Sequence record: NC_061443.1
Length of the DNA: 64,000 nt
Direction: 5' to 3' (one strand)
Under the pieces are notes generated by a model, which was given only the letters and a program-made list of their open reading frames with translations, had not been told where the DNA came from and made no database searches. This document shows positions 37,439 through 55,379 of this stretch, piece by piece (the first letter of the stretch is position 1; each line of letters opens with the position of its first letter). A program made the translations under genes and the position numbers.

Positions 37439-39061
37439 ATGTCATTCGATCTTCGTCAAAACTTACTGCTTGTTCGTGACGCTACTCTGACAGGCAAGCC
37501 ACTGTTCTATTTCTACAACGCTATGGGCCGTGAGATGGTACTCACAGGTGATGTGCTGCGTGAAATCCTTGATCGTCAGAAAGACGGTACGCTCTGCACT
37601 AACACGTACTGGGGTTTTGCTACTGACCCTACGCTGGAAGTTTGGTCGTTCGATGATAACAATGACCTAATGCTTCACCACCACATCGGCAAGTCCTGCA
37701 AAACGTTTCTGCCTTACGAAATGATTGCAAGCGCCCATGACGGATTCAAGCCAATCAATGGCATGTTCATTGAAGACAGCCTGCGCCGTATCATCGCTAT
37801 TCACCTCAAGGCGACTTGTCGTGAAGAACAAAAGATTACGTGGTTCGCTGACATGCCTGAGCCTGAGATGCGTAGCATGTTACTTTCGTTTGGTCTGGGC
37901 CCGCTGCGTGTGTCGCGTGAAGACAAAGAAGGTCTGGTCAAGCTGCACGATCAGTGGCTGGAAGACTTTGACGACAAATACAAATACACGCACAACGCGA
38001 TTGGCCTTGATGACGACGAGAAGATACCTGCTGACTACCGCCCTGAACGTATTCGTGACATTATGAAGCGTATGATGCACAACACCAAGACGCAGGAGAT
38101 GATGGTTCAGACTCTGAATGACCTGTTGCGTCAGTGTCGTATCAGAGGCGATATCCCAATGCCTGGTGCCAACTTCAATCTCCAGCAGTTGATCTGCTAC
38201 TACGCAACGCATTTAATCTATGCGCCTGATGCAGACGAAAAGCTGCGCAGCCTGATCGATAATCCGCAGTTCGTTGTCAACTTCATCTACGGCTGGTACC
38301 CAGACTATTCGTGGATTGCGGTCAATGAAGAAACGTTCGACTATCAGCAATCGCTGGTACGCGCGGCGCTGATCTCGTTAAAGCGTCATGTAGAGAATGA
38401 AATCGGTACGTACAAGATTGTTCACGGCATGGTTAAGTTTGCGGACGGCTTCGACCCACACGCGAAAGACAAACCAGAAGAAGTCGAAGAGGAAGAGTTC
38501 GACGAGGACGAAGACGAAGACGAGACTGATGACCAAGAGAAAGAGGTCATCGACTACCTGCGTACCAAGACCGAAGACGAACTGCGTAAAGCAGCGCTCA
38601 GAAATAAAATGGCACGTCCGATTAAATTGAAGAACATGGACATGGAAGATTTGCTTGAGCTGTGTGCTGACTACTACGGCACTTCGATGCCAGAAGACTT
38701 CGATGAAGAAGAAAAGGAACAGGAGCGTGTTCCAGGGACTCGCAAGTTCCCTGCGCTGTCTAACGAGTCCAACATTAGTTATGAGACTATCCGCAGTATT
38801 CTGAGCCGTGCTCGTTTGTATAAGGCACGACCTGTACGCGTTAAGAACAAAGATCGTAATGCACGTAAAGAAGCAGAAGCTGTCGAGCGTAAGAACATTA
38901 CTAGCGTCCTTCGTGATGCTATCAATGATGGCTGGTTGGAATCTCTGCCTGCGAATACGTTAACGGCTCTTGCATACTCCCTGACTAGGATGAAAGACAA
39001 CGACCGTTATCCTCGTGACTGCGCATTCCTGAAAGAACTAATTAAACACGCGGTCAAGTGA
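37439..39061 (+). CDS. 540-aa protein with acidic tract and HEH-like module
   Basis: YLRTKTEDELRKAALRNKMARPIKLKNMDMEDLLELCADYY after a D/E run. Confidence 0.85.
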   Translation: MSFDLRQNLLLVRDATLTGKPLFYFYNAMGREMVLTGDVLREILDRQKDGTLCTNTYWGFATDPTLEVWSFDDNNDLMLHHHIGKSCKTFLPYEMIASAHDGFKPINGMFIEDSLRRIIAIHLKATCREEQKITWFADMPEPEMRSMLLSFGLGPLRVSREDKEGLVKLHDQWLEDFDDKYKYTHNAIGLDDDEKIPADYRPERIRDIMKRMMHNTKTQEMMVQTLNDLLRQCRIRGDIPMPGANFNLQQLICYYATHLIYAPDADEKLRSLIDNPQFVVNFIYGWYPDYSWIAVNEETFDYQQSLVRAALISLKRHVENEIGTYKIVHGMVKFADGFDPHAKDKPEEVEEEEFDEDEDEDETDDQEKEVIDYLRTKTEDELRKAALRNKMARPIKLKNMDMEDLLELCADYYGTSMPEDFDEEEKEQERVPGTRKFPALSNESNISYETIRSILSRARLYKARPVRVKNKDRNARKEAEAVERKNITSVLRDAINDGWLESLPANTLTALAYSLTRMKDNDRYPRDCAFLKELIKHAVK

Positions 39062-39096
39062 ATCGTAAACAATACCTAACATTGAAGGGAAACAAA

Positions 39097-39519
39097 ATGC
39101 AATTCGAACAAAACATTCTGGTAGTTAATCGTGTAGCTCTTATCATGGGTGATGACTTAGTGGCTAAGTGGGGCGAGGCAGCAAATGCCAATCGCGATCA
39201 AGCTGCATACGCAACAATCGTCATTCTGTCTCGCTTGCAGCAAAAGATTATCACCGCTCTTGCTGCTGAGAATCCAGAAGCCTGTTGTCGTCCTGATATG
39301 CTTTGGACGGACTACGGTTCAATCTCAACGTCCGGCCTGTTCGTTATTGCCTCATCGGCAGATCGTGAGGTGCTGAATCACTTCGAGGACCACGACTACC
39401 TGAATCATCTGCACACGATCAAACGTGTCGCCGAAGAGAACGGGTTCACGTTAACAGTTACTCCAGTGAAGCACTTATTCCCATTCACTAACACTGAAAT
39501 CCCAGCTAACATGAAATGA
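39097..39519 (+). CDS. hypothetical protein
   Basis: AAGGG RBS before ATG 39097. Confidence 0.7.
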   Translation: MQFEQNILVVNRVALIMGDDLVAKWGEAANANRDQAAYATIVILSRLQQKIITALAAENPEACCRPDMLWTDYGSISTSGLFVIASSADREVLNHFEDHDYLNHLHTIKRVAEENGFTLTVTPVKHLFPFTNTEIPANMK

Positions 39520-39527
39520 GGTGACAT

Positions 39528-39827
39528 ATGCCACGTGAACAAATCCTGATGAATGATGTTGCCATCGTCCTGACTATGAGTGAGCGCCGTGCGTTCCTTG
39601 GTCCGAAAGCAGACGGCTTTGTGTACCTCCCATCGAAGGAGGCCCTTACGAAGTTTGAGGCGCATATCAAGAAGTATGGCAGTTCTGATGACTATGCGTT
39701 TATCGAACACCGTGAACTGCACTCTCTGAACTCTGCGGGTATTGTAGCTATCGCTCATGCTGTCGAGTCTGACTCTGAGCGCCCATGGCTGTGGACGAAA
39801 GAAGACTTCCGCGTCAAGCTGTGGTAA
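39528..39827 (+). CDS. hypothetical protein
   Basis: GAGGT RBS. Confidence 0.7.
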   Translation: MPREQILMNDVAIVLTMSERRAFLGPKADGFVYLPSKEALTKFEAHIKKYGSSDDYAFIEHRELHSLNSAGIVAIAHAVESDSERPWLWTKEDFRVKLW

Positions 39828-39880
39828 GCATAAAACTGGCTAAAATCGCGGTATCAATCTGAGTCTGTCTGTGATACAAT
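39826..39880 (+). promoter_or_regulatory. Class-1 phage promoter
   Basis: GCATAAAACTGGCTAAAAT..TGaTACAAT, spacing 36. Confidence 0.75.
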
Positions 39881-39932
39881 AGAAGCGTAGCTTGTGCTGC
39901 GCTTTCTTACACTACGTCTGAGGAGACAACTG

Positions 39933-40394
39933 ATGGAAACAATCAAACCCACATTTTCTGATTTAGAGCTGCAAGATCAAATGATGGATGTGGCTGCCCA
40001 GAAGATTATCGAACTGAAACCTGAATGGGTGGACGTTTGTGTTGCTGCGTTGCGCCTGTATCTGATCGTGTGCGACGATATCGGTGGCCCTATCCCTGAA
40101 CTGCGTTTCGTTCATAACGCGAAGCCTTGCCGCCTACAGTTCAACTTGCTGGAATCGTCTGGCGGTACCGAGTTCGTTGCGAATGAGATCGATAAAGACA
40201 AGCAGATGGAAATTGTTGAAGCGCTGTTGTCTACAGCCGAGGCGAGTCCGACAGGTCACTCTATGTTAGACTTCGCAATCTGTTCTGGCCGCCTGTTTAT
40301 GATTGGCTATGACGGTCTTGCTGGTACGCTCGATAAGATCTGCTTCCGTGCTGACAAGAAAAACTACACCATGAATCTGGTCGAAGGGGAATAA
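39933..40394 (+). CDS. hypothetical protein
   Basis: GTCT-GAGG-AGAC hairpin RBS before ATG 39933. Confidence 0.75.
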   Translation: METIKPTFSDLELQDQMMDVAAQKIIELKPEWVDVCVAALRLYLIVCDDIGGPIPELRFVHNAKPCRLQFNLLESSGGTEFVANEIDKDKQMEIVEALLSTAEASPTGHSMLDFAICSGRLFMIGYDGLAGTLDKICFRADKKNYTMNLVEGE

Positions 40395-40395
40395 T

Positions 40396-41076
40396 ATGAA
40401 ACCTGATTACACTCTGCTTAAACGCAGTAAGACGAACGAAGATGTTTTCGCTTTCGTGTTTGATGGCGACGTGTTGGCTAAATTCAATGCCTCCAACTTA
40501 TACAGAGCGTTTGTGGAGACGCTCAAGACAAACTGCATCAATGAGGTCGATATCCTGTGGCGTGACGGCACACGCACTGTTGAGCAACTGGTGATTCATC
40601 ATACCAAAGAGTTCGCCTCGTTCGACACTATCGTCCACGACTACCTCGTATGCTTGATGCTTCGCGCACAGGGTGTTGGTCATTCGCTCGCTGTCCCTGT
40701 CGATATTCGCTCTATGTATGATGCCGACGGCCCGATGATCAATGAGATTCGCATTGATAGTGAAATCGTCGCTGACATGATGCGCCATATCAAAGACGCG
40801 CCTGTGGACGTCATAGACGATGAAGACGATGAAGACGACGACATGGACGAAGACGACGAGTGCTGGGATGAAGACCAGACCGAGTTCCACGATATCGAAA
40901 CAGAATCTATCGCCGACAACAAATTGCAGATTGGCGATTGGGGATATCGCGCACATGACTGGGCGATCACTCTGACCGACGAACAGGTAGACCGCATCCA
41001 CTTCCTCGAAGTTGGAATTGACCCTGACATTGAACTGCCTCTTGCAGATGATGCTAAGAAGGACGCATTCTTCTAA
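40396..41076 (+). CDS. acidic hypothetical protein
   Basis: 226 aa with D/E tract. Confidence 0.8.
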   Translation: MKPDYTLLKRSKTNEDVFAFVFDGDVLAKFNASNLYRAFVETLKTNCINEVDILWRDGTRTVEQLVIHHTKEFASFDTIVHDYLVCLMLRAQGVGHSLAVPVDIRSMYDADGPMINEIRIDSEIVADMMRHIKDAPVDVIDDEDDEDDDMDEDDECWDEDQTEFHDIETESIADNKLQIGDWGYRAHDWAITLTDEQVDRIHFLEVGIDPDIELPLADDAKKDAFF

Positions 41077-41267
41077 TGAAAACGATTAACGAACAGGTCA
41101 AAGAATTGAAACAGCGCGGCGTGCTTATTATCGAAGAACACCAGAAACACACGCTGCCTGATTTAACCTTCACGCTAGATTGCATGTGCCTGTCACACAC
41201 GAAGCGAGAAGTAGAGACAACCACGCGCGGCCGCGTTGTTAAGATTCGACTGACTAACGTTCACTAA
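41076..41267 (+). CDS. small hypothetical protein
   Basis: TAATG coupling. Confidence 0.55.
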   Translation: MKTINEQVKELKQRGVLIIEEHQKHTLPDLTFTLDCMCLSHTKREVETTTRGRVVKIRLTNVH

Positions 41268-41280
41268 CTTTTGTGGTCTT

Positions 41281-41355
41281 GGCCCGCCCGTCCAGCAATG
41301 CTCACCCCCAATGAGGTGTCTCGCGCAGAGGCATGACGGTCACCGGGTCCTTTTT
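41281..41355 (+). ncRNA. candidate structured cis-RNA / complex terminator
   Basis: Nested stems GGCCCG/CGGGTC, CCGTC/GACGG, ATGC/GCAT, CACC/GGTG followed by TTTTT. Confidence 0.4.
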
Positions 41356-41411
41356 AGAGCGCACTTCCTAGTACGCTGTATAAAGTAAAACACAATCAAC
41401 AGGAGGCTGTT

Positions 41412-41810
41412 ATGAAGTTCAACGATGTGTCCACTAAAGCTCAGGTGGTTCTTATGGCGAGTGCATTCGGTGGTGCGGTGGAAGTTCTGTCCCGTTCAAT
41501 GGACGATGAAGGTCGCAAGTTTCTGGAAGTTGCGTTGCAGCGTGTCGGTCTAACCGTTGGTGAGTTCCAAACTCTTATCAATGACCTCGACGATCCTACC
41601 AGTCGAGAGATCGTTGCTGTTATGGAAACAGCGCAGGCAGAAGATTCTGAGCGTGATGCAGAAGCGCAACGCCAACGTCTGGCTGATGAAGAGGACGATG
41701 AAGACGAAGAAGCTGCCGACGACTCTGATACAGACGCAGACGGTTGGCAGGACCTGCATGAAGATCGCATATGTCTCATATGTAACCGTGAATACTGCGT
41801 CTGTCACTAA
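41412..41810 (+). CDS. acidic protein with C-terminal Cys/His cluster
   Basis: Hairpin RBS; ends ICLICNREYCVCH. Confidence 0.8.
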   Translation: MKFNDVSTKAQVVLMASAFGGAVEVLSRSMDDEGRKFLEVALQRVGLTVGEFQTLINDLDDPTSREIVAVMETAQAEDSERDAEAQRQRLADEEDDEDEEAADDSDTDADGWQDLHEDRICLICNREYCVCH

Positions 41811-41868
41811 TCTGCATAAATCTGGACAAAACGACGGTTGTCTCAAATAGCTGCCTGAACTATACTAT
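41809..41868 (+). promoter_or_regulatory. Class-1 phage promoter
   Basis: AATCTGCATAAATCTGGACAAAA, -35 TTGTCT, 17 nt, -10 TATACT. Confidence 0.8.
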
Positions 41869-41872
41869 ATAG

Positions 41873-42028
41873 ACAGCGAGACAACGTTCTCTCTGAATGC
41901 CTTTGTAATTGCTTTGACCATGTGTTTTCTTTTTCCCGGCACATGGTCCTTTTTAAAGACGGCTTCCAGCGAGGCTGCTTTAAAAAGGGTTCGATACCCT
42001 TTGAGCGCGTCGGGCTTTACGCGGTTTT
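41873..42028 (+). ncRNA. candidate multi-hairpin sRNA or leader with a T-loop
   Basis: Follows promoter; stems 41916-41948, 41951-41985, 41984-42002 (loop TTCGATA), 42006-42023 plus T tract; no ORF. Confidence 0.5.
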
Positions 42029-42069
42029 CGCCTTACGTGCTCTCATGCTAAACCGCAAAGGAAATTGAA

Positions 42070-42783
42070 ATGCCTACTACTTCACGTCCTAAGACAGAAG
42101 ACAAGTTCTCCCGTGCTCGCGCTGCTAAGAACTCACCTGAACGTCAGGCAGCGGCTGCTAAGAAAACTCCACGAGGTCCTTCCTCGGTTCGTCCTAAATC
42201 AACGGCAGATCGTGAGCCTAAGATTCGTGACGAGGAGCGTGTGTACAATCTCGTACATGCAATTCTGAGCGCGTGGAAAGCTGATGTGGGACATGCCGAA
42301 AACACGGCAGCATCTGCTGGTATCATCAAAGTGTCTCGTCGTAAAATTGAAGGTGCATTGCGTGACCTCAAGAATACACGCTTCACTAAAATCCCGACGC
42401 TCATTAATGATATCCTGACAGGCTCTGATATCTGCGACGAGTTCGGCATGTGGGTGTACGTCGAGCACGATAGTCCTGATTGGATTTTCGTCCGTCTGCC
42501 TGATAACAGCACACCTGTGATTCGTGCCGATATCAGTTACGAAAAGACTGGCGAAAGGTCCGCGTCTGTCACAACGTCCAGTGAAGCACTCATGGAAACG
42601 TTCGACGACAATGAAGACGAAATCGAGATCGAAATCTTCGACTGCACTGAAAGCGATATTGAAGACCTCGAAGCTGCTGAGATGCGCAAGCGTCTGATCG
42701 ATGCGAAAATCATCAATCCAGAAGCTGCCCCGAAGCTGTCACGCAATGACTTAATGAAGCTCTGCGCGTACTACAGCGCATAA
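42070..42783 (+). CDS. protein with basic N-tail, acidic linker and C-terminal HEH-like module
   Basis: Ends DIEDLEAAEMRKRLIDAKIINPEAAPKLSRNDLMKLCAYYSA. Confidence 0.85.
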   Translation: MPTTSRPKTEDKFSRARAAKNSPERQAAAAKKTPRGPSSVRPKSTADREPKIRDEERVYNLVHAILSAWKADVGHAENTAASAGIIKVSRRKIEGALRDLKNTRFTKIPTLINDILTGSDICDEFGMWVYVEHDSPDWIFVRLPDNSTPVIRADISYEKTGERSASVTTSSEALMETFDDNEDEIEIEIFDCTESDIEDLEAAEMRKRLIDAKIINPEAAPKLSRNDLMKLCAYYSA

Positions 42784-42824
42784 GCAATAACGAGCAGGCA
42801 GCACGTACACTGCCTGCTATCTGC

Positions 42825-42885
42825 GAAGTATGCAGAAAACTGGACAAAATCGTGGTTGTTATCTGACGACCACCTATGCTATACT
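42825..42885 (+). promoter_or_regulatory. Class-1 phage promoter
   Basis: TGCAGAAAACTGGACAAAAT..TTGTTA..TGcTATACT, spacing 37. Confidence 0.8.
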
Positions 42886-42945
42886 TAATGCAGGTGCACA
42901 ACGCACCGCAAACAAAACTACCACTTATACTGAGGAGTATTAAAC

Positions 42946-44565
42946 ATGGCTCGTATCGAAACTAACACTAATCTGGTTGGCAAAACTATCGTCCTGCTGA
43001 ACGGCACCAAAGCTAAAATCGAAGATGCAATCGCGTCTGGTTACAAAGTGAAAGGCCAGACCAAACGTATCGCCACTCGCTGCGTTATCAAAGAAGGCGC
43101 TCACTTCAAAGAAATCGAGCGCATGAACATGAGCCTGCTGGAAGATACTGGCGAAGGTTATGTGAAGCTGAAAGACGCGAAAGCGGCGAAAGCGTCAACC
43201 AAGAAACCAGCGGCGAAAGAGAAAGCGCCGAAAGCAGATAAGAAAGCTGCGAAGCCTGCGAAAGAGAAAGAACCTAAGGTTCGTCGTAAGTCTTCAAAAG
43301 AGAAAGGCGACGAGTATCAAGATCTGGCACACGCTATCATCAAAGGCGGCAAACGTGCGGCGCCTGTTGAAATCGCTGAAATCGACGCTGACCTGACCGA
43401 CTGTGTTGCTCAACGTCTGGTAGACGTGTTGAACAATAGCGAAGTTGCGAAGCTGTGCGCCGATAACAAGACGCCGATCGCAAACGCAGTCGAAGTAACG
43501 TACGGCGCTGAGTTCGCTCCTGAGACGAACGTCATGCAGATCACGTTGAGCCTGCAATATGCGAAGCCTGTTCAAGCGCTGTCTCGTCCGACTCTGGAAA
43601 ACGCAGAAGCTATCGCGTTACGTGCTCAAAAAATGGCGGCGCCTAAGCTGTCTATGAAACTCAAGAAAGCGATTCGTGAAGCGTTCAGCCTTGAAGACGC
43701 TAACGACCTTGAGCTGGGCACTGTGTTGTTGTCTGACGGCGAAGAATTTGTGTACTTCGGCGAATCTGCGAAGCATGTCGGCAAAGCGCTGCTGTATGTC
43801 GTAGAGACCGACAAGTTCAAATCTGTGCTGGGTTCTACTCTGGGTGAGTATGAAATCCCAGACGAAGAAGACGGCGAAGAGGAAGAAGAAGAAGTCGAAG
43901 ACGAGTCCGAGGAAGAGGAAGAAGAGGATGAAGTCGAAGACGGCGAAGAAGAAGACGGCGAAGAAGAAGACGACGCCGAATATGAATACGTCGCAGTTAA
44001 CAAAGACCAGCTCGATATGGTCAACAAGAAAGTGACTGCCAAGTATCACGCTGCGCTGGCTGAACGATTCAATACGACCGAAGAAGTTCTGATTCCTGGC
44101 CTGATGCTGACTGATGGCGAAACTACTTTCGCTTATCTGGGCTGTGATAGTAAAGGCGGGCTGCTGGTAATCGACTGTGGTGATGAAGGCGAAGGTGAAG
44201 ACGTGCTGATGTATAGCAAGTCTGATATCAAACAGCTGGACGACTTCAATCCTGTGATGGGCGAAGCTGACGAAGACGGCGAAGAATCTGATGCCGAAGA
44301 AGACGACGGCGAAGACGGCGACGATGAAGAAGATCTGGATGATGAAGAAGACGGCGACGATGAAGAAGATCTGGATGATGAAGAAGGCGACGACGAAGAC
44401 GAAGACGACAACGACTTTGACTTCGACGATGTGCCAGAAGCTGATATCGAAGATCTGACCGAAGACGAACTGCGTGACCGCGTAGTTGAAGCCGGCCTGA
44501 CTACTCCGCGTAAAGCTGATAACATGGACGAAGCTAAACTGCGCAAGCTGCTGAAAAGCGCATAA
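42946..44565 (+). CDS. 539-aa polyampholyte: beta domain, K/A-rich tract, two acidic tracts, C-terminal HEH-like module
   Basis: Composition read from translation; ends DIEDLTEDELRDRVVEAGLTTPRKADNMDEAKLRKLL. Confidence 0.9.
   Translation: MARIETNTNLVGKTIVLLNGTKAKIEDAIASGYKVKGQTKRIATRCVIKEGAHFKEIERMNMSLLEDTGEGYVKLKDAKAAKASTKKPAAKEKAPKADKKAAKPAKEKEPKVRRKSSKEKGDEYQDLAHAIIKGGKRAAPVEIAEIDADLTDCVAQRLVDVLNNSEVAKLCADNKTPIANAVEVTYGAEFAPETNVMQITLSLQYAKPVQALSRPTLENAEAIALRAQKMAAPKLSMKLKKAIREAFSLEDANDLELGTVLLSDGEEFVYFGESAKHVGKALLYVVETDKFKSVLGSTLGEYEIPDEEDGEEEEEEVEDESEEEEEEDEVEDGEEEDGEEEDDAEYEYVAVNKDQLDMVNKKVTAKYHAALAERFNTTEEVLIPGLMLTDGETTFAYLGCDSKGGLLVIDCGDEGEGEDVLMYSKSDIKQLDDFNPVMGEADEDGEESDAEEDDGEDGDDEEDLDDEEDGDDEEDLDDEEGDDEDEDDNDFDFDDVPEADIEDLTEDELRDRVVEAGLTTPRKADNMDEAKLRKLLKSA
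44311..44382 (+). repeat. Perfect 36-bp tandem duplication (EDGDDEEDLDDE x2)
   Basis: GAAGACGGCGACGATGAAGAAGATCTGGATGATGAA at 44311 and 44347. Confidence 0.95.
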
Positions 44566-44647
44566 CGATCTAACGTAACATCGAAACACTGTGCGGCTCT
44601 CACGGGGCCGCATACTTGACAAATAAAGCTGATTGAGGAATCACACT

Positions 44648-45904
44648 ATGTCAAACGCAAACAAAATTCTGCTTAACGCTCGTGTACGCCGTTTAGACGG
44701 AACCAGCACCTACATCAACAAAGTGAACGCTAACGGCTATAGCACCGATGCGAAAGGCCCGCAGATTCCTGTGAAGCGTATCGTGTTTGCAGGCAAGACG
44801 CTGAAAGAGATTGAAGCGCCGTTCGAGAAAGGCGAGTATGTCATTGTGCAGGGCGTTGCAGTGAAGCTGAACAAGCGCCAGCAACGTGAACTGGCGGATA
44901 ACACTCTCGACGAAAAAGCGCTGCGTCCTGACTTCGGACGTCTGGCATTCATCGACCGCGATGACGGCAAAGCAACTGACGGCAAGAAAGTGAAGCCGAA
45001 AGCTGAGAAGAAAGAAGGCGGGTTGAAAGCAACTCGCAAGCAGAACGGTGACAAGCGCACCAAGAAAGAGCGCAAGGCAGAGAAGGCGAATCTGAAAGAC
45101 GACCTCGACTTCATCGCGTCTGACAAGATCGACCGTAAAGCTGAACTGGCTCACATCATCGACGCTACCATCGAAGACTGCAACACTAAAGAGCGCCGCA
45201 AGCTGCTGTCTGACTCGTTTGACATGGACTGGAAAGACATTAAGAAGCACGGCGGTAAGGGTGTCGTCAAACACATGGGACGCAAAGCCGCTCAAGCTGC
45301 TGTGAACAAAATGAGCGCGACTGTTACTCAAGACGCATTCATCAAACAGATGCCTGCTGAGTTGAAGCGACTGATTGCTGACCGTCGCCTCGTACTGAAC
45401 AAGCGCCAGATAGAAGCTGTGCTCTCTGCGCTTGGGCTTGACGTGAAGTTCTATAACATCGCAATGCAGACGCTGCTGGGTAATCTGTCGCTCGCTGTGG
45501 ATGACACGCTGGTCAAGCCTAAGGCTGAGAAGCCTGCAAAGCTGAAAAAGCACAAGCAAGCGAAGCCGCAGTATCTGACTGAGAAAGACCAGCAACGTCG
45601 CATGAAGAAAATGAAAGTGAAGCTGTTGGCGCCTACTGAGAAAGGCATGAAGAAAGCCAAAGCGCATTTGAAACAGGCGAAAGTAATTCTCGCAAATAAG
45701 CTGGGCATCACGTCGAAAGAAATCAAACGTGGTCTGATTGCGTATCGCCCGAACGGCGTGGACTATATGTTCGTTGCCAGCGATGCGCGCGGCCCGATCT
45801 TCATCGACAAGCACGGCGACCCATGCGTGTACACTTACGAGAATCTCGAAGCAACTTTCGACTTCACTTTGAACAAACCTTCTGAACTGGATGCTACTGT
45901 ATGA
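44648..45904 (+). CDS. Lys-rich basic protein, paralogue of 42946 at both ends
   Basis: N-terminal LNARVRRLDGT..ANGY..G..KEIE aligns with LVGKTIVLLNGT..ASGY..G..KEIE of 42946. Confidence 0.85.
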   Translation: MSNANKILLNARVRRLDGTSTYINKVNANGYSTDAKGPQIPVKRIVFAGKTLKEIEAPFEKGEYVIVQGVAVKLNKRQQRELADNTLDEKALRPDFGRLAFIDRDDGKATDGKKVKPKAEKKEGGLKATRKQNGDKRTKKERKAEKANLKDDLDFIASDKIDRKAELAHIIDATIEDCNTKERRKLLSDSFDMDWKDIKKHGGKGVVKHMGRKAAQAAVNKMSATVTQDAFIKQMPAELKRLIADRRLVLNKRQIEAVLSALGLDVKFYNIAMQTLLGNLSLAVDDTLVKPKAEKPAKLKKHKQAKPQYLTEKDQQRRMKKMKVKLLAPTEKGMKKAKAHLKQAKVILANKLGITSKEIKRGLIAYRPNGVDYMFVASDARGPIFIDKHGDPCVYTYENLEATFDFTLNKPSELDATV

Positions 45905-46742: not shown

Positions 46743-48012
46743 TCACGTATTCAACCACGACGAGAAGCAATTGCTCCTGAATGTGGCTGAGACTCGATAT
46801 CTGGTGCGGCTTGATTGCCCTGAGTATTTGAAGAAGTCAAAACACTCGATTGAAATTCGCCATACAGTTACCAACCGTGGTGAGCAACGTCGAAGCGGTG
46901 TTGTTAACACAACGTTTGTGCCGCGTATTCACGCCTCAACTGTGCAGCGCCTGTTACGTGAAATACGTGACAACGCAACTGTCAGTTCGGCAAACAGTCT
47001 GGCTGCATTGTTTGAGCTGGGACTTGGTGTGCCGAAGCAACGTGATATCGCAACGTACCTGCGTGACTACTCTCGGGAGAACGATAAGAAAGGCGTGGGT
47101 ATCAAGTATATCCGCAAGCTGGTAAATGAGTATCACCGCAAGCACCGCCATAGTTTTGCGGGTAGTCGCTGGATGATGCCTGCCGCTTACACGGCGAACT
47201 TGCTGAACATGCAGTCCTTCATTCATCTGAAAGAAGACGGCTATAGCAAGAAAGTGAAAGTGCCTGACGGTCTGCCTGTTGTTCTGATCTATCATAACAC
47301 GAACCACGCCGAGTCTGAGTTCTCTCTGTGTGACGCATTCGCTATTAGCCCGCTGGGTTATCCTATGCCATTCGCCCAGATTGCTCTACGCCCAGAGTTC
47401 AAAGCTGTGCCGAAGACGTTTCAATCTAAAGCGCTGCGTGGGCAAGGCATGTACAGCATGGTGATGGGCATTGTTCACTGGGCAAAGGGCGATGCGCTGA
47501 CGAACGTCCGTGAGCTAAACGCTATCGACGATGACCCGTACCTGACGTTGCTTGCAAGTGACCAGTATGCTGATCGTCGTTCGCCTGAGTATCAAGAACT
47601 GCTGGACAAACGCGCTGCATTCGCTGAACAGCGCCATGAGTGGACAGAAGTGCTTGCGAAGTATGGCAACACAACACGTACACTCAAGCCTAAGCAGTTA
47701 GAACGATTGGCGCAGGCAGAAGACTTCTTCAAAGAACGTAAATCGTTTATGGACGAGTTTGATAAGTTCGAGAAGAAAGAGAACCACCACGCTGCTAAGA
47801 AGTTCGCAGTAGCCAGTGCGCAATTCGCTGCCGTTGACTGTGGTACCATCGCTGACCGTTCAACGTATATGTCCGTTGCTTCTGGCCTCGACAAGGTACA
47901 CAAGATTCTCACGAAGTGGGGATTCACCACGGTCGATACTGTTAATAGTAGTTTGAAGAAATCAATCCTTACATTCGACCCAACAACCGCTACTCGCGTG
48001 TGGTCACTGTAA
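46732..48012 (+). CDS. putative GNAT-fold acetyltransferase with insertions and a Sel1-like repeat
   Basis: IALRPEF-(12 aa)-RGQGMYSMVM resembles motif A; HKILTKWGF resembles motif B; NSLAALFELGLGVPKQRDIA is Sel1-like. CDS certain, function tentative. Confidence 0.5.
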   Translation: MFYDHVFNHDEKQLLLNVAETRYLVRLDCPEYLKKSKHSIEIRHTVTNRGEQRRSGVVNTTFVPRIHASTVQRLLREIRDNATVSSANSLAALFELGLGVPKQRDIATYLRDYSRENDKKGVGIKYIRKLVNEYHRKHRHSFAGSRWMMPAAYTANLLNMQSFIHLKEDGYSKKVKVPDGLPVVLIYHNTNHAESEFSLCDAFAISPLGYPMPFAQIALRPEFKAVPKTFQSKALRGQGMYSMVMGIVHWAKGDALTNVRELNAIDDDPYLTLLASDQYADRRSPEYQELLDKRAAFAEQRHEWTEVLAKYGNTTRTLKPKQLERLAQAEDFFKERKSFMDEFDKFEKKENHHAAKKFAVASAQFAAVDCGTIADRSTYMSVASGLDKVHKILTKWGFTTVDTVNSSLKKSILTFDPTTATRVWSL

Positions 48013-48038
48013 ACACAACTTATCTGAGGAGATAACGC

Positions 48039-51000
48039 ATGTCTGACAATAACCTGGGCGCTGCTGCAACATTCGGCTCTGAGACTCAAAAGCAATTAAA
48101 CGACCAACAGCGTCGTGCGCATTCTGCTGAGTCCGGCCACGTAAACAAATGTACCATCGTCGTGCTGACTGCGCTTAACGCGCACGGCCGCTTCTCTTTC
48201 CTGACCTCTGACGAGCAACTGCGTGAACGGTCCATCGAAGGTAAAGTGATGGACCGTCTGCCGGATCTGATTGGACGTGCATCAGGCCCGTCTACTGACC
48301 CGAACAGCGCGTACCACATTCTGCATCCGAACAACGGCGTGCCAACTCGCATTGACGAGCGCATCAAAGTTGGCGAAGCGGATTCGGTCATCATTTCATA
48401 TACTGTAAATAAAGCAGTGTCAGAGATGTATGGCAGTTTATCGCTGGCGCTGTTTAGTGCTGGTGAAAGTGATATCGCTGATTTGGCGGCTGAGTTTGGT
48501 ATTCACTCCATCTCAATCGTTGAAGAAGCGAAAGCGCCTGACTATATCAAAGCTCTTACTGAACAGGTAGAAGCTCTGAATATTGTAAATCTCACTAGCA
48601 TTGATGAAACTGACGGTGCTTTTGAGAAACCAGTAATCGACTACAGCATCCTGCCGGGTAACCCAATCAACGTACTGTCCGGCGCTGTGCGTACTTTCAT
48701 TATGCAAACTCTAAACGGCGAAGTATTCGCTGCGATTCCAAATAACGGAGAACTGAACGTGAAACAACCTACTAACGCAACGCCGGTCAATCTGGACGAA
48801 GACTTCGACGCAGAAGACGAAGTGATTGATCAGCAGGGCGGCGAAAGCGACGAAGACGAAGTGACAGGCACTGACCTGTTTGGCTATAAGGCCGAAACGC
48901 TGACCGTCGCGCAAATGACAGAAGCTCTTGAAGCTCTGTCGTATGATGTTAGCGCGATGGACGAAGCTGGCATCCGTGAGTCGTTCGAAACTGAACAGCA
49001 AATCTGGATGGAAGGTAACGACGAAGCTGGCTCTGACGATGAAGGCGAAGAAGAAGAAGACGCCGAAGAAGACGGCGAAGAGGAAGAAGAAGATGAAGAT
49101 TCTGACTTCGACCCTTCACTGTATCTCGGCCACCTGCTGTCTGCTGACCAGCTTGATCGCACGGCGCTGAAAGTCCTGGTTCGCACTCAGGACCTGAAAG
49201 TCATGAAGTCTGACACCGAAGAAACTCTGACGGCGAAACTGCTGGAGCTGGTTGAAGGTGCGACTGAGCAGGAAATGGCTGAACTGATCGACACCTTCGT
49301 TGCTGCGCTGCAAGAGCGTGAGATCGATTGTCCGAACCTGCTGGCCGCTCTGGCGTCTGATGAAGACGAAGAAGAAGACGGCGAAGAAGAGGAAGATGAA
49401 GACGATTCTGAGGAAGAAGATTCCGAAGAAGACTCTGATGATTCTCAATCTGTGCAGGACCAGATCGATGCAGTGACTGACCCGCTCGATTACTTCCTGT
49501 TCCCTGGCGGTTCCCTGACTGCTGAACAGCGTTCTGCTGCTGTCGAAGCGATGGGCGAAGATGTTGCTGGACTGAACATCGTTCAGGTAATGAAAGCGTT
49601 CTCTCGCATCCAGGCGCAGTCTAACGAAATCGACGTTGACGCAGAAGAAAGCGAAAGCAACGTTGCTGAACTCGAAGCGCTGCTGGGCCAGTACGACGAT
49701 GCTACCGTACAGCACATTGCAGAAAGCCTGGGCGTTAACGTTGACGAATGCGAAAGCGTTGACGATATGATCGAAGCGATTGTTAGCGGCGGCACCGAAG
49801 ACCAGTTCGCTGCGGTTGAAGAAATCGCAACTAACTACGGCATTGACCTGTCCGAAGTTGCAGAAGGCGAAGACCTGGAGTTTGTTGACGCGCTGCTGGC
49901 TGTGCTGCCTGCGTTCTTGTCTGACGACGAGCAGGACGAAGAAGCCGAAGAGTCTGATGAAGACGAAGCGGAAGAAGACGGTGAAGACGACACCGATGAA
50001 GAAGACGAAGGCGACCATGAAGTGATTGATGCTTCTGAAAACGAAAACCTGCGCTTCATCAAAGCTGTCGATACTGAAAACGCTGTCGGCACGTTGCTTG
50101 CTGTTGACATGGACCAGACTGTCGTTATCAACTTCACTCTGACTGACGGCGATACCTACGCTGCTGTAGAATCTGAGCTGTCTGATATCAACGGCTTCAA
50201 CTACCGCTTCCCGTTCAACCTGGGTAAAGCGTCTAAAGGTACTGCGCCAGGTTCAATGCTGCTGCCAGCTCAATCTCTGCTGGACATTGTTGAGCGCGTT
50301 AACACTACCCGCTTCCTCGCCGACCCTAAAACGTTCGACGTCGGTGCGTGGGCTGAAAGTCTGGAAGCAACGCTGGCAGAAGAAATCCCTGTCGCGCTGT
50401 ATGCTGATCGTATCGAAGACGGTATGGACCCAAGCGAAGCCGGTCTGGTTGTTGGTGACTTCCTCGACGAAGAAGAACTGGCTGCTGCCGCTGACCTGGG
50501 CCACATCGACGAAGACGAAGCTGCTGAACTGAACGGTGACCATCTGCCACTGGCAAGCCTGTACAACGCCCGCTCTCGCGTTCGTCCTGTGCAAGTTGAT
50601 ACCGCTTATGTTGCTCTGCACACCACAGTGATGAACATCGCACTGCCGGGCTTCTGGAGCGAAGCGCCAGTACAGCGTATGATTCAGGCCGCAGTTAATC
50701 GCGTTATCAATCTGGCGGAAAGCGTTGAAGGCATTAAAGTGTACGCAGCATTCACTCTGGAATCTGCCGCACTGCTGAACAACGGCCGTCTGTTTGAAGC
50801 GCTGTCAACTCTGCGTGAGTTCGAAAACGTCCAGTCTTACTCTGCTGCTGATGCCGCAAACTTCGACGATGCAGAAGATGTGATCGAAGTAGCTGGCTCA
50901 CTCGACTCTCGTGACCTGCCGCTGTCTGTACTGGCTGGTGGTCTGGCTGGTGCAACGTTCGACAACGGCGGCGACCTGACGATTCTGGTTCCGTGCTTCA

Positions 51001-51053
51001 CGCAGGAAGAAGAATCAGACGAAGAAGAAGGCGACGACGGCGACGACGAATAA
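48039..51053 (+). CDS. 1004-aa extremely acidic scaffold protein with several Rho-N/HEH-like helical modules
   Basis: Multiple D/E runs separated by modules such as LTVAQMTEALEAL, LDRTALKVLVRTQDL, YDDATVQHIAESLGV..DDMIEAIV. Confidence 0.9.
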   Translation: MSDNNLGAAATFGSETQKQLNDQQRRAHSAESGHVNKCTIVVLTALNAHGRFSFLTSDEQLRERSIEGKVMDRLPDLIGRASGPSTDPNSAYHILHPNNGVPTRIDERIKVGEADSVIISYTVNKAVSEMYGSLSLALFSAGESDIADLAAEFGIHSISIVEEAKAPDYIKALTEQVEALNIVNLTSIDETDGAFEKPVIDYSILPGNPINVLSGAVRTFIMQTLNGEVFAAIPNNGELNVKQPTNATPVNLDEDFDAEDEVIDQQGGESDEDEVTGTDLFGYKAETLTVAQMTEALEALSYDVSAMDEAGIRESFETEQQIWMEGNDEAGSDDEGEEEEDAEEDGEEEEEDEDSDFDPSLYLGHLLSADQLDRTALKVLVRTQDLKVMKSDTEETLTAKLLELVEGATEQEMAELIDTFVAALQEREIDCPNLLAALASDEDEEEDGEEEEDEDDSEEEDSEEDSDDSQSVQDQIDAVTDPLDYFLFPGGSLTAEQRSAAVEAMGEDVAGLNIVQVMKAFSRIQAQSNEIDVDAEESESNVAELEALLGQYDDATVQHIAESLGVNVDECESVDDMIEAIVSGGTEDQFAAVEEIATNYGIDLSEVAEGEDLEFVDALLAVLPAFLSDDEQDEEAEESDEDEAEEDGEDDTDEEDEGDHEVIDASENENLRFIKAVDTENAVGTLLAVDMDQTVVINFTLTDGDTYAAVESELSDINGFNYRFPFNLGKASKGTAPGSMLLPAQSLLDIVERVNTTRFLADPKTFDVGAWAESLEATLAEEIPVALYADRIEDGMDPSEAGLVVGDFLDEEELAAAADLGHIDEDEAAELNGDHLPLASLYNARSRVRPVQVDTAYVALHTTVMNIALPGFWSEAPVQRMIQAAVNRVINLAESVEGIKVYAAFTLESAALLNNGRLFEALSTLREFENVQSYSAADAANFDDAEDVIEVAGSLDSRDLPLSVLAGGLAGATFDNGGDLTILVPCFTQEEESDEEEGDDGDDE

Positions 51054-51078
51054 TATCTCGTCTAGCGTGTAACTGAAT

Positions 51079-51108
51079 GGGTGGCTCGAAAGGGCCACTC
51101 ACTTTTTT
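51079..51108 (+). terminator. Rho-independent terminator
   Basis: GGGTGGCTC-GAAA-GGGCCACTC then TTTTTT. Confidence 0.85.
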
Positions 51109-51122
51109 GGGGATCTGTAAAC

Positions 51123-51944
51123 ATGACTCAAGAAGTAGACCACAGCGCTAACATCGTTAAGATGGTAAGTGACCGTGATGATAAAATCCGAGAGCTGTCT
51201 ACCAACCTTTCAGTGACTACTGGTCGCAAGGAAGATGCCGAAGCTGAACTGCGTGAACTGTCGCTTGACCATCTGGCACTCAAAATCAAGCTGCGTAGCC
51301 GCGAACGTGAACACGCCTCTGAGATTGCGTTGCTCGATGAACGCATCCGTGAAGTTGTTGGTTTCTGCAACGAGCAAACAGTCGAAGTAAAGAACATTCG
51401 AACTGAACTCGAATCTGTAAAACAAAAGAGTGAACCGGCTGCTGCCCTGCCTTTCATCATGCAAATGATAATGTCTGCTGGTGTAGCGCACTACCATGCG
51501 ATTATCGCACAATGCGCTTTCGCTACTGTTAATCGTGCAACAAATAAAGTTGCTCGTGAACTGCGTGAAATTTATGATAACGATAATGTAGTGAAGCATC
51601 CTTCGCTTTATCGTGCCGCGGTTCGAATGTGTAACCAGCTTGGTGTTTCACCTCCACCACGCACTGACATGTTGGCGGAACTTCAAGAGTACGTGGCTCA
51701 GAACATCGACCTGTACACGAAAGACCCGCAGTACGCTGCGTCTGAATCGGCCCTGCGCCAGATTATCGCTGCGAAGAATAATGCCGCACATTATGGCGCT
51801 TACGGCCGTGATGTGTATCAGATGTTCGACTGGCTCCCAGCATTGACTGCCTGCCTGGACGACATTGAAGATGACTACAACGATTTGGTGGAACAGTCGC
51901 TCTATCAAGTCTGTCGTAATCTGATTAACGATAGCTTTTCATAA
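51123..51944 (+). CDS. coiled-coil protein
   Basis: Heptad-rich N-terminal half; ATG 51123. Confidence 0.8.
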   Translation: MTQEVDHSANIVKMVSDRDDKIRELSTNLSVTTGRKEDAEAELRELSLDHLALKIKLRSREREHASEIALLDERIREVVGFCNEQTVEVKNIRTELESVKQKSEPAAALPFIMQMIMSAGVAHYHAIIAQCAFATVNRATNKVARELREIYDNDNVVKHPSLYRAAVRMCNQLGVSPPPRTDMLAELQEYVAQNIDLYTKDPQYAASESALRQIIAAKNNAAHYGAYGRDVYQMFDWLPALTACLDDIEDDYNDLVEQSLYQVCRNLINDSFS

Positions 51945-52697
51945 TCTGTAAAAGTTACCTGTAATCGAATCTGTAAACACTAATTGAAGTTCGAACCGAG
52001 CAACAAGCTCACACTTATAAATCCCGGAGCATTACAATGGCTAAAGCATCAAAGACTTCCCTGGTACCTACCCTGGTTTCTCGCATCGCTAAAAAATCTG
52101 GCTCTATCGGTACTTCTAAAGTTAAGCCTTCTGAACTGCCGCACGATATCCTGATCGAAACGGTACAGGCTGTTGAGCTGATTGGTTTCATCACCGACCG
52201 CACTGAAAACAGCGTTACCATTCGTCACAAACGCGGTCATGGTTCTTCTGCGCAAGTTGTTTCTACCTTCGGTCCGAACCAAATCCTGTCTGTGCTGGGT
52301 GAAGCTGGTGGTCACGGTAGCGTAATTGCTCTGATCAACGCGCCGGTTCGTGAGTACAAAGGCTTCAACGTTAAATACAAAGGCGCGACCATCGTTGCTA
52401 CCTCTGTTGAGACTGGCGAAGTAGTTGAAGTGAACACCGCACTGCCTGGCTTTACCGTTCGTTCAACTGTGAACGAAACTGCTGCTGCTAAAAAGTACGG
52501 CACGCCTGCTCCGACCAAAGCTAAAAAGCTGGACAAAGGCGACAAAGCTGGTAAGCCTGCGAAAGCGGTAAAGAAAGCAAAAAAGTAAGTAAGTCTGACG
52601 AAGACTTCTAACTTTCGAAATCTGTAAATATTAAGTATGCAGCGAGATAAAAATGTTTCGCTGCCTGTCTCTCGAAATCTGTAAACATTAATTGAAG
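51944..52697 (+). promoter_or_regulatory. Class-2 motif (TCGAA)ATCTGTAAA(C/T)A(C/T)TAA, four copies; candidate phage-specific late/middle promoter
   Basis: Copies at 51944, 51969, 52620, 52677; AATCTGTAAACAyTAATTGAAG at 51968 and 52676 differ by one base; also at 51113 and 59466. Confidence 0.65.
52037..52588 (+). CDS. basic protein: beta-rich core with K/A-rich tails
   Basis: High-expression codons; ends KAKKLDKGDKAGKPAKAVKKAKK. Confidence 0.85.
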   Translation: MAKASKTSLVPTLVSRIAKKSGSIGTSKVKPSELPHDILIETVQAVELIGFITDRTENSVTIRHKRGHGSSAQVVSTFGPNQILSVLGEAGGHGSVIALINAPVREYKGFNVKYKGATIVATSVETGEVVEVNTALPGFTVRSTVNETAAAKKYGTPAPTKAKKLDKGDKAGKPAKAVKKAKK

Positions 52698-52732
52698 CAA
52701 CATCGCTTCTAATCAAACAGGAAATAAATATC

Positions 52733-53542
52733 ATGGCAAAAGCTAAAGCAACCGCAAATACCGCAGCAACCGTTCTGGCTAAAATGCTGGGCGTCGTAGT
52801 CGAAAACGCCAGCGCTGCTGACATTGCAGCAATCCTGAAAGAAGCCGGTCTGACTGTTGTTGGCGGTAAAGTTGTTAAAGCTGAAAAAGGCGGTAAAGCT
52901 GCTAAAGGCAAAAAGGCCAAAGCACCTACCGTTGCTGAAATCGTCGCTGCTGTTAAGGACGAAGAAGAACTGGACATCTCTGCTGTAAGCGAAGATGATC
53001 TGCGCGCCGCAGTTGTTAAAGCGAAGCTGTCCACCGCTAAGAAAGCAAAAGCGCTGGACGAAGACGAACTGCGCGAACTGCTGAACGATAGCCTGGGTGG
53101 CGAGTCCGAAGAGGACGACGAAGAAGAAGAGGACGAAGACGAAGACGAGGACGAAGACGACTCGGACGACGAAGAAGACGGCGACGACGAAGACGAAGAC
53201 GAAGACGAAGACGGCGACGACGACTCGGATGATGAAGACGAGGACGAAGACGACGAAGACGACGAAGACGGCGACGACGAAGACGAAGACGAGGACGAAG
53301 ACGAGGACGAAGATGACGAGGACGAAGATGAACTCGACCTCGACGCACTCGACAAGAAAGAGCTGTTAGCTCTCGTCCTCGAACATAAGCTGGCGCCGGC
53401 TAAGAAAGCCAAGAAAATGGACGAAGATGAACTGCGCGAACTCTGCGAAGAACATTTCGGCGGCGAAGACGACGAAGACGAAGACGAAGATGAAGACGAC
53501 GAAGACTTCGACGACGAAGACGAAGACGAAGACGACGAATAA
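52733..53542 (+). CDS. K/A-rich N-terminus plus two HEH-like modules embedded in poly-D/E tracts
   Basis: DISAVSEDDLRAAVVKAKLSTAKKAKALDEDELRELL and DLDALDKKELLALVLEHKLAPAKKAKKMDEDELRELC. Confidence 0.9.
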   Translation: MAKAKATANTAATVLAKMLGVVVENASAADIAAILKEAGLTVVGGKVVKAEKGGKAAKGKKAKAPTVAEIVAAVKDEEELDISAVSEDDLRAAVVKAKLSTAKKAKALDEDELRELLNDSLGGESEEDDEEEEDEDEDEDEDDSDDEEDGDDEDEDEDEDGDDDSDDEDEDEDDEDDEDGDDEDEDEDEDEDEDDEDEDELDLDALDKKELLALVLEHKLAPAKKAKKMDEDELRELCEEHFGGEDDEDEDEDEDDEDFDDEDEDEDDE

Positions 53543-53594
53543 GTCCTGATCTGAACCGGCCTGCCCCTCTAGTTCTAACGAATGAGCGAGGGGC

Positions 53595-53624
53595 AAATAA
53601 TCGAAAAAAATATCTCGATTATTT
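53595..53624. repeat. 10-bp inverted repeat AAATAATCGA-N10-TCGATTATTT in AT-rich intergenic region
   Basis: Read directly; upstream of the H1-like gene. Confidence 0.8.
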
Positions 53625-53760
53625 TCGTAAAAAGTTTTAAAATTCCTGTTGTTGTATGTTGAACATAATAATGTATGACTACAGGAAAACAAACCTGAAT
53701 AAATTTATCTTTTCATCCAGCGGTGAAAACGCCGCATCAAATATAAAGTAAGGAAATATC

Positions 53761-54288
53761 ATGTCTAAGAAAGCAATCAGCGGCCTGAACAAAGAAATCC
53801 GCGCAATCGAAAAATCTGAAAAAGCTCTGGCCAAAACCGCTGGCGAGATCACTAAGCAAGCTGAAAGCCTGTCTGAGCGTCGTGCTGGTCTGACTGCACA
53901 AGTTGAAGCGTTGCAGAACGACGGCGCCGCTCCGGCTAAAGCTCCGAAAGCAAAAGCGGCTAAAGCAGAGAAAGCTGCTAAGCCTGCCAAAGCTGAAAAA
54001 GCTGGTAAGAAAGCTAAAGCTGAAAAGGCTGAGAAGCCTGCTAAAGCTGAGAAGGCCGGTAAGAAAGCTAAAGCAGAGAAAGCTGAGAAGCCTGCTAAAG
54101 CTGACAAGAAAGCTAAAGGCGCCAAAGCTGAAAAGCCAGCTAAAGCAGAAAAAGCTGGTAAGAAAGCGAAAGCTGAAAAAGCTGCTAAGCCTGAAAAAGC
54201 TGGCAAGAAAGTGAAAGGCGACAAGGCTGCTAAAGCCGGTAAGAAAAGCAAAAAAGAAGCCGAAGACTTCGACTTCGATATGGAATAA
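53761..54288 (+). CDS. histone H1-like (AlgP/Hc2-type composition) DNA-binding protein with N-terminal coiled coil
   Basis: About 4-5 imperfect 18-aa repeats KAEKAxKPAKAEKAGKKA (54-bp period); acidic tail EAEDFDFDME. Confidence 0.85.
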   Translation: MSKKAISGLNKEIRAIEKSEKALAKTAGEITKQAESLSERRAGLTAQVEALQNDGAAPAKAPKAKAAKAEKAAKPAKAEKAGKKAKAEKAEKPAKAEKAGKKAKAEKAEKPAKADKKAKGAKAEKPAKAEKAGKKAKAEKAAKPEKAGKKVKGDKAAKAGKKSKKEAEDFDFDME

Positions 54289-54321
54289 GCAAGCGCCGCG
54301 CATTAGCGGTACTTGATTCGA

Positions 54322-54352
54322 AAGGGCAGCGCCGACGGGCGTTTGCCCTTTT
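54322..54352 (+). terminator. Rho-independent terminator
   Basis: AAGGGCAGCGCC..GGGCGTTTGCCCTTTT. Confidence 0.85.
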
Positions 54353-54385
54353 GTCATATCTGTCTCGAAATTTGAGGATAATCGA

Positions 54386-54868
54386 ATGTCTGCCGAACAT
54401 CTGCTTAACGACGACCTGCCTGACGACTCCACAGTTGTCCCTGTCCTTAAACAGGACAAGCCTTCCTACTACGACTTGATGACGCTACGCTTAGAAGCTG
54501 GCTCTCGTCTTGCTCGCGCTCTCAAAACTCTGGTCGATGCGCATGTCATTAACGGACCTGCCCTGAAAGATCTTCTTCCTGCCGCGTTGCGTATCTCTGA
54601 AACTCACTGGGCTGATATATGCAACGGCTTAACTCCTATCCACGACGAGAACAATAAAATCACGCTTGTCGGTAACCTGCCTGCTTGCATTGAAGCGTTT
54701 CGCATTGTTGTAATGGAACATGCTCAACGTAACGCACTGGAACTGGAGTGCCGCAACATGATTAGCCACGCAGAAGGTTTCAAAATTCTGACCCAGCCTC
54801 AAACACTACAGATTGAGCCACTACACTTCTGCGATGGAACCTGCGACCATGACACAAAAACTGTCTGA
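54386..54868 (+). CDS. hypothetical protein
   Basis: GAGGA RBS. Confidence 0.75.
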   Translation: MSAEHLLNDDLPDDSTVVPVLKQDKPSYYDLMTLRLEAGSRLARALKTLVDAHVINGPALKDLLPAALRISETHWADICNGLTPIHDENNKITLVGNLPACIEAFRIVVMEHAQRNALELECRNMISHAEGFKILTQPQTLQIEPLHFCDGTCDHDTKTV

Positions 54869-55379
54869 GCAAATCAACCGCTATTTTAATCTCATGGAGA
54901 AAATCCGTGAGCAACTCTTTCGTGTGCTGAACGTGTCCGATCGCTACCTGTGCATCGTGAGCTTTAACACCCAGCATCAGGCAATGCAGTGCGACCTAGT
55001 TAGTCGTGAGAGCCTGCTGCCCGCCAAGCTACTCGAAGGTCTTAGTGGTCAGGAGCTTGTAGTGTACGGCACCATTACTGCCCAGATTGAGAAATGGGTA
55101 GCAGACGGTATGAGCGACGACTTCCCGATTACGCAAGATGCCGATACCTACGCGCAGTATCGCAAGCTGGTGGACCCTGAGCAAGAGCCTGCTATCTCTG
55201 ACGCTGACTTGGCAGAGCATGTTGCTTCACTGCCTAAGTCTGACGCCCTGAAGTATGTTGACCCTCTGAGTAAGTATGAGCTGTCTATCATCTGCAAAGC
55301 GTGGGGACTCGCTCAAGATGTTAGTGAGTCTGTCATGCTGTCTCTCATTAAAGGTCACATTCTGCGCCGCGCTCCCTAA
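54849..55379 (+). CDS. hypothetical protein with C-terminal SAP/HEH-like motif
   Basis: VDPLSKYELSIICKAWGLAQDVSESVMLSLIKGHI. Confidence 0.7.
   Translation: MTQKLSEQINRYFNLMEKIREQLFRVLNVSDRYLCIVSFNTQHQAMQCDLVSRESLLPAKLLEGLSGQELVVYGTITAQIEKWVADGMSDDFPITQDADTYAQYRKLVDPEQEPAISDADLAEHVASLPKSDALKYVDPLSKYELSIICKAWGLAQDVSESVMLSLIKGHILRRAP

Follow-up and report, generated by a model that had tools for sequence, protein, structure and literature searches.

A portable module of predicted helix-extension-helix type on unrelated proteins of Erwinia phage pEa_SNUABM_2 and other phages

The window analyzed here, a stretch of 64,000 nucleotides identical in sequence to the terminal 64 kb of the genome of Erwinia phage pEa_SNUABM_2 (NC_061443.1, 265,442 bp, genus Alexandravirus), encodes four proteins that carry between them five copies of one module of about 44 residues. 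Structure modeling predicts that the module is an independently folding three-helix domain of helix-extension-helix (HeH) type. Sequence comparison indicates that the module and its acidic lead-in form a cassette that a few otherwise unrelated phage proteins have gained, lost, and traded among themselves, and in other phages the module occurs on single-stranded DNA-binding proteins (SSBs) and on a RecA-type recombinase. The module is probably a reusable tether to the phage DNA-handling machinery, and not the genome-wide address tag envisaged in a preliminary description made from the sequence of the window. Genes are named by their first window position, and record positions are obtained by adding 201,442 to window positions.

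Five module copies in one gene block

The five copies, all on the plus strand, are as follows.

38543-38680 (+): module copy 1, residues 369-414 of a 540-aa protein; internal, with an acidic disordered linker before it and a disordered stretch after it
42649-42780 (+): module copy 2, residues 194-237 at the C-terminus of a 237-aa protein; the most divergent of the five
44437-44562 (+): module copy 3, residues 498-539 at the C-terminus of a 539-aa protein
52967-53098 (+): module copy 4, residues 79-122, the first of two in a 269-aa protein; a Lys-rich stretch before it and an acidic run after it
53330-53461 (+): module copy 5, residues 200-243, the second in the 269-aa protein; an acidic run on each side

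They are carried by four genes.

37439-39061 (+): carrier gene 1 (gp309, annotated as hypothetical); an N-terminal domain of ~340 aa, the acidic tract and module, and a C-terminal domain of ~110 aa
42070-42783 (+): carrier gene 2 (gp316, annotated as hypothetical); terminal module
42946-44565 (+): carrier gene 3 (gp317, phrog_33433); two long acidic tracts and a terminal module
52733-53542 (+): carrier gene 4 (phrog_30618); a helical N-terminus, Lys-rich stretch, module, acidic run, module, and acidic run

The copies are 42-46 aa long. Their homology was examined by a leave-one-protein-out test, in which a profile built without the copies of one protein was searched against the six-frame translation of the window. 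Copies 1 to 5 were each recovered as the best non-training match, with E-values of 2.3e-7, 2.1e-4, 1.5e-11, 4.2e-8, and 1.2e-5, respectively, and all further matches had E > 1. In the composition-matched shuffle check that the preliminary description had named, the real copies scored 23-48 bits against 11-13 bits for the best shuffle, and none of 2000 shuffles per copy reached the real score, ruling out a chance or compositional repeat. With a profile of 81 instances, the five copies gave E = 4e-20 to 8e-16. The five strong copies first described are real, then, and lie within a few bases of where they had been placed.

The other four copies share 27-36% protein identity with copy 1, and nucleotide identity between copies is 52-62%, values that mark them as old and not as products of recent duplication; recent tandem duplication is ruled out by this nucleotide identity together with conservation across the genus. 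Once the modules were masked, the four carriers showed no detectable mutual similarity (blastp E > 4). No functional family was found for the carriers or their neighbors in Pfam, PHROGs, or NCBIfam, the only matches being to PHROGs without an assigned function, and the record annotates the genes across 37439-55379 as "hypothetical protein" throughout. A model of the 540-aa carrier made with AlphaFold2 (AF2; predicted local distance difference test score (pLDDT) 73, a moderate value) had no meaningful neighbor in the Protein Data Bank (PDB) by Foldseek. Our literature searches on Alexandravirus, AD1, phage helix-extension-helix domains, SAP with SSB, and Rho_N returned nothing on these genes.

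To place these copies in the genome as a whole, the remainder of the 265-kb sequence was scanned in pieces (loci L001-L005) with profiles of 5 copies, of 32 instances (orthologues added), and of 81 instances (metagenomic relatives added). No sixth copy was detected across the genome with any of the three profiles. The "many" proteins of the preliminary description therefore reduce to four carrier genes with five copies, and its "genome-wide" tag reduces to genes that all lie within one 15-kb block, directly upstream of the type II topoisomerase genes. The weaker versions that it had listed at 10078, 16591, 48039, and 54849 are not detectable members of the family (HMMER E > 5, hhalign probability <1%), and attempts to rescue them with the 32- and 81-instance profiles and hhalign failed, including for the several in the 48039-51053 protein. 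Clearly analogous variant modules in gp45 of Serratia phage Serbin were missed by the profile and found only by Foldseek, so distant HeH-like segments can escape such searches, and the weak versions are unproven at the fold level and not disproven.

Acidic sequence accompanies most copies, and three tracts stand out.

38486-38542 (+): acidic lead-in of copy 1; 15/19 residues D/E, predicted disordered
44275-44436 (+): acidic lead-in of copy 3; 40/54 D/E, with a DFDFD motif at its end, encoded by GAA/GAC tandem repeats
53114-53329 (+): acidic run between copies 4 and 5; 67/72 D/E, encoded by GAC/GAA tandem repeats

The stretch preceding the module is very acidic for the three copies that follow these tracts, moderately acidic for one (10/30), and Lys-rich for copy 4, whose acidic run comes after it. 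The module had been said to stand nearly always right after an acidic tract; the association is real but not universal. We also observed long antisense open reading frames (ORFs) across acidic tracts at 52312-53412 (-), 43618-44622 (-), and 49116-50018 (-). These are not genes but arise because the GAA/GAC repeats contain no stop codons when read in reverse complement; a naive longest-ORF caller takes one of them in place of gene 52733.

Fold, family, and cassette behavior

An AF2 model of the module, computed from a 15-sequence alignment headed by copy 5, reached pLDDT 84.5 and placed helices at positions 11-20, 26-31, and 34-46. In the model of the 540-aa carrier, region 361-413 formed a separate helical bead (pLDDT ~82), and both the acidic tract at 343-363 and the post-module stretch at 422-434 were predicted to be disordered. 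When the module was compared with the PDB using Foldseek, the SAP-containing structure 1zbh_A (template modeling score (TM) 0.65, root-mean-square deviation 1.6) and a Ku70 chain, 9q80_K (TM 0.64), were found, both with E of ~8-9. In BFVD, the module's own relatives were followed by proteins named for Rho_N, HeH/LEM, or SAP, with TM 0.65-0.74; among them were three annotated "Rho termination factor, N-terminal domain" (A0A8S5R7U2, A0A8S5LNC5, and A0A8S5LRV0; probability 0.96-0.99, TM 0.72-0.73, E = 0.3-0.8).

Sequence profiles relate the module to the same families more faintly. The module profile searched against all PDB chains gave no match with E < 0.2, and neither SAP nor Rho entries were among the matches; SAP (PF02037) did not match the window carriers or the isolated modules at E <= 10. 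Among distant members of the family, P0027 matched SAP in register at E = 3.6e-4 (residues 97-109 on SAP 1-13; 20.5 bits vs a gathering score of 23.9) and HeH at E = 0.37 (residues 99-123 on HeH 2-26, in register; 11 vs 28.9 bits), and P0008 matched Rho_N in register at E = 0.047 (residues 1-36 on Rho_N 5-37; 14.1 vs 24.9 bits). By gathering score, the module belongs to none of SAP, Rho_N (PF07498), or HeH/LEM (PF12949 / PF03020), with nothing at all for LEM, and NCBIfam has no match to it. Four PHROGs contain the module (phrog_30618, 33433, 3724, and 2250), all without an assigned function, and their cross-matches fall on the module regions. The resemblance to Rho_N, SAP, and LEM motifs suggested in the preliminary description is thus supported for the modeled fold and does not extend to Pfam membership. 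No description of the module exists in Pfam, NCBIfam, or PHROGs, and we regard it as a family in its own right, an unannotated variant of the known HeH fold with a modular habit.

Across the 81 instances, hydrophobic residues fill ten core columns at 86-100%. Column 31 holds Ala in 88% of instances and column 17 holds Arg in 66%, basic residues occupy columns 29, 30, 33, and 34 in 58-69%, and each of the two long helices has an acidic N-terminal cap.

The evidence for movement comes from related genes. In a 16-member alignment of the gene-37439 family, the acidic tract and module form a clean indel between conserved N- and C-domains, present in 9/16 members and absent from 7/16. Two members, P0015 and P0042, carry a module of the second gene-52733 type, with alignment scores of 146 and 151 against 66 and 49 for their own type. 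The gene-42070 module is a free-standing 50-aa ORF in Dickeya phage AD1 (gp311, L007 25037-25189) and is absent from pEa_SNUABM_32, and the entire gene 42070 is missing in pEa_SNUABM_30. Orthologues of gene 54813 in AD1, SNUABM_32, and SNUABM_3 have an acidic tract and module, which gene 54813 of the window does not. From these alignments, the acidic lead-in and module appear to be a single cassette that is gained, lost, and swapped between unrelated proteins. The GAA/GAC tandem repeats that encode the acidic tracts could supply the homology for such exchanges, which would account for the joint movement of tract and module.

Two further observations were made in these relatives. The AD1 orthologue of gene 42070 is split into three ORFs (AD1 gp309, gp310, and gp311). 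Proteins of ~70 aa at L007 23369-23584 and L010 22949-23161, with counterparts in L008 and L009, contain a module-like segment with a weak profile match (E = 0.02-0.1) and are absent from pEa_SNUABM_2.

Occurrence in other phages and candidate roles

A profile search of 1.84 billion representative proteins (E <= 1e-3) matched 33 clusters, two of which were helix-turn-helix repeat false positives. The other clusters comprised relatives of the four carriers, the gene-54813 protein in a longer form, and, as a third group, three kinds of protein from unrelated phages. P0025 and P0028 are DUF669 proteins carrying the module; proteins of this family are OB-fold SSBs whose C-terminal region is acidic and flexible and which act together with an AAA recombinase (PMC13687109). 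P0005 and P0025 are encoded within a cassette of PD-(D/E)XK nuclease, AAA_24, and SSB genes beside DNA polymerase A, and their SSB tails hold five modules and one module, respectively. A RecA-family recombinase of an uncultured phage (L015 10766-12337, on a contig of ~137 kb; Pfam RecA 1.7e-18) ends in a module and acidic tail. P0013, a small acidic two-module protein with the layout of the gene-52733 protein, is encoded immediately upstream of this recombinase. No further copies were found in the ~38 kb around the P0013 and RecA-family genes. In the cultured phage Serbin, gp45 (L020 5001-5972) is a DUF669-like SSB followed by two repeats of an acidic tract and variant helical module, and its gene sits in a PD-(D/E)XK, nucleotide-binding, and SSB cassette after DNA polymerase I.

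On this basis we lean towards the view that the module is a tether by which its carriers are kept where phage DNA is replicated and recombined, either on the DNA itself or on a hub bound to it. The acidic disordered linker would hold the folded bead away from the carrier, and the conserved Lys-Lys-Ala-x-Lys-Lys patch between the helices of the bead would make the contact with phage DNA or with a DNA-bound partner. Very different phages have retained this surface patch, an indication that the ligand is universal; the simplest candidate would be nucleic acid, as with SAP domains. The idea of a reusable tag on unrelated proteins, put forward in the preliminary description, gains support from the presence, absence, and swapping of the cassette and from its occurrence on SSB- and RecA-type proteins elsewhere. 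Both the ligand and the tethering, and with them recruitment to one hub or compartment as that description proposed, are steps that we infer.

Several observations weigh against this picture of an HeH-type tether. Each module is net negative, with 9-13 D/E against 7-9 K/R, which is unusual for a non-specific DNA binder, and this charge together with the position at SSB and RecA tail ends points towards docking. In both the PDB and BFVD, Foldseek E-values outside the module's own family are not significant, as is expected for 48 residues. No window copy reaches the Pfam gathering score for SAP, Rho_N, or HeH, and the sole Pfam match of the window copies is to Rho_N, out of register (E = 0.16, 12.4 bits). 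The four carriers here have no identifiable function, so that it is other phages and the gene neighborhood that connect the module with replication and recombination.

The charge and the tail position favor a possible, if less probable, alternative in which the module is a protein-protein docking bead that does not bind DNA. A single partner common to the carriers would receive it, for example the phage recombinase, SSB, or polymerase, or the two-module gene-52733 protein acting as a scaffold, much as partners are recruited by the acidic tips of SSB C-terminal tails. Protein binding is known for HeH domains of the LEM type, and 17/49 module instances end within 3 residues of the C-terminus. 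The end of an SSB or RecA C-terminal tail is the usual place of partner-binding or autoregulatory tips, and the DUF669 tail is acidic and flexible (PMC13687109). Against docking, the basic patch and core are conserved in 260-kb Alexandravirus genomes, in a ~135-kb phage contig, and in 13- and 20-kb polA/DUF669 contigs, a breadth more readily explained by a universal ligand such as DNA than by a protein restricted to one lineage, and no candidate partner co-occurs in all of these contexts.

It is improbable that the module is an inert stable cap without a common ligand, hitch-hiking with acidic tracts whose GAA/GAC repeats promote illegitimate recombination. The tandem-repeat coding of the tracts, the clean indel, the swapping of module types between genes, and the dispensability of the module in 7/16 members of the gene-37439 family would all fit such a passenger. 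However, copies as old as these, at 52-62% nucleotide identity, keep the core and basic patch across genera and unrelated phages, which indicates purifying selection on the module itself. Least credible, and in our estimate very improbable, is a capsid-targeting or scaffold-type helix-loop-helix that delivers the carriers into the procapsid as internal or ejected proteins: short basic helix-loop-helix motifs of scaffolding proteins do bind coat protein, and among the weak BFVD neighbors of the module are a few annotated as head-tail connector or virion structural protein, but the carriers lie beside topoisomerase genes and are not part of the block of structural genes, which is on the minus strand at record 43-186 kb, carriers elsewhere are SSB- and RecA-type proteins inside replication modules, and the literature searched yielded no virion proteomics covering these genes.

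If the module binds DNA or one shared partner, several consequences would follow. Small and portable, it has been joined in unrelated phages to an SSB, a RecA-type recombinase, and several uncharacterized proteins, and such binding would explain how phages co-localize a changing set of proteins at replication and recombination sites. It would also give a functional handle on four conserved "hypothetical" Alexandravirus genes and on at least four PHROG families without an assigned function, and could offer a small tag to direct cargo onto phage DNA. In addition, the module illustrates cleanly how domain cassettes are exchanged, a process in which the repeat DNA coding for the acidic tracts may be the driver.

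Neighboring genes and comparison with known systems

Several other genes lie in or next to the module block.

48039-51053 (+): 1004-aa protein (phrog_36461); four long acidic tracts alternating with helical segments
52037-52588 (+): 183-aa protein; C-terminal tail very rich in Lys; the two-module acidic protein comes next
53761-54288 (+): 175-aa protein; a coiled-coil N-terminus, then ~100 residues of Lys/Ala/Glu/Pro repeats, and an acidic-aromatic tip, EDFDFDME
55514-57541: GyrB-like type II topoisomerase gene, directly downstream of the module block
57798-59462: GyrA-like type II topoisomerase gene, after the GyrB-like gene

The 52037-52588 protein, with its Lys-rich tail, and its two-module acidic neighbor show that strongly basic and strongly acidic proteins occur together in the block. 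The 53761-54288 protein looks like a basic DNA-coating protein of the H1/AlgP type with an SSB-like tail; its gene has 27/54/99-nucleotide tandem repeats at 53959-54237, and the DFDFD motif of its tip is shared with the lead-in of the gene 42946 module. The 42946-44565 protein contains, by eye, two alike short beta-rich segments (G-x-hydrophobic-L-x-D-G-E-x-x-F-x-Y-x-G), each followed by an acidic tract, a pairing that suggests an internal duplication. A broader idea, which we regard as a long shot, is that the 15-kb block encodes a chromatin-like, charge-patterned set of proteins that forms, with phage DNA, a condensate-type compartment for replication and recombination. The set may comprise the proteins with acidic tracts and SAP-like modules, the four-tract 1004-aa protein, the H1-like protein with Lys/Ala/Pro repeats, and the protein with the Lys-rich tail, and the module would then be the address tag that admits clients, for example SSB- and RecA-type proteins in other phages. 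In the literature examined, no report of a protein-shelled nucleus in this jumbo phage group was found.

Among known domains, SAP (PF02037; Ku70, PIAS, SAF-A) resembles the module in its length of ~35-45 residues and in its pattern of hydrophobic-x-x-hydrophobic-x-x-x-E-L-R, a basic linker, and x-x-L-hydrophobic-x-x-L, and many SAP proteins, like the module carriers, combine the domain with long acidic disordered regions. Unlike the Gly-centered loop of SAP, the linker of the module is modeled as a short extra helix with Lys-Lys-Ala-x-Lys-Lys, and the net charge of the module is negative. Rho_N has a three-helix arrangement like that modeled for the module, and the best named viral structural neighbors of the module bear its name, but no cold-shock-like RNA-binding domain adjoins the module as in Rho. 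HeH/LEM shares the predicted fold class, with one weak in-register match and one structural neighbor so named, but without a significant sequence match to the module; to our knowledge, the LEM partner BAF has no phage counterpart.

There is also a parallel in overall layout with the acidic C-terminal tails of SSBs (E. coli SSB, T7 gp2.5, T4 gp32, and DUF669), in which a disordered acidic tail likewise ends in an interaction element. The module occupies such a tail position in P0025, P0028, P0005, and Serbin gp45, and acidic-aromatic motifs of the DFDFD type adjoin modules in the window. Classical SSB tails end in a short linear motif, whereas here the tail bears one to five folded beads.

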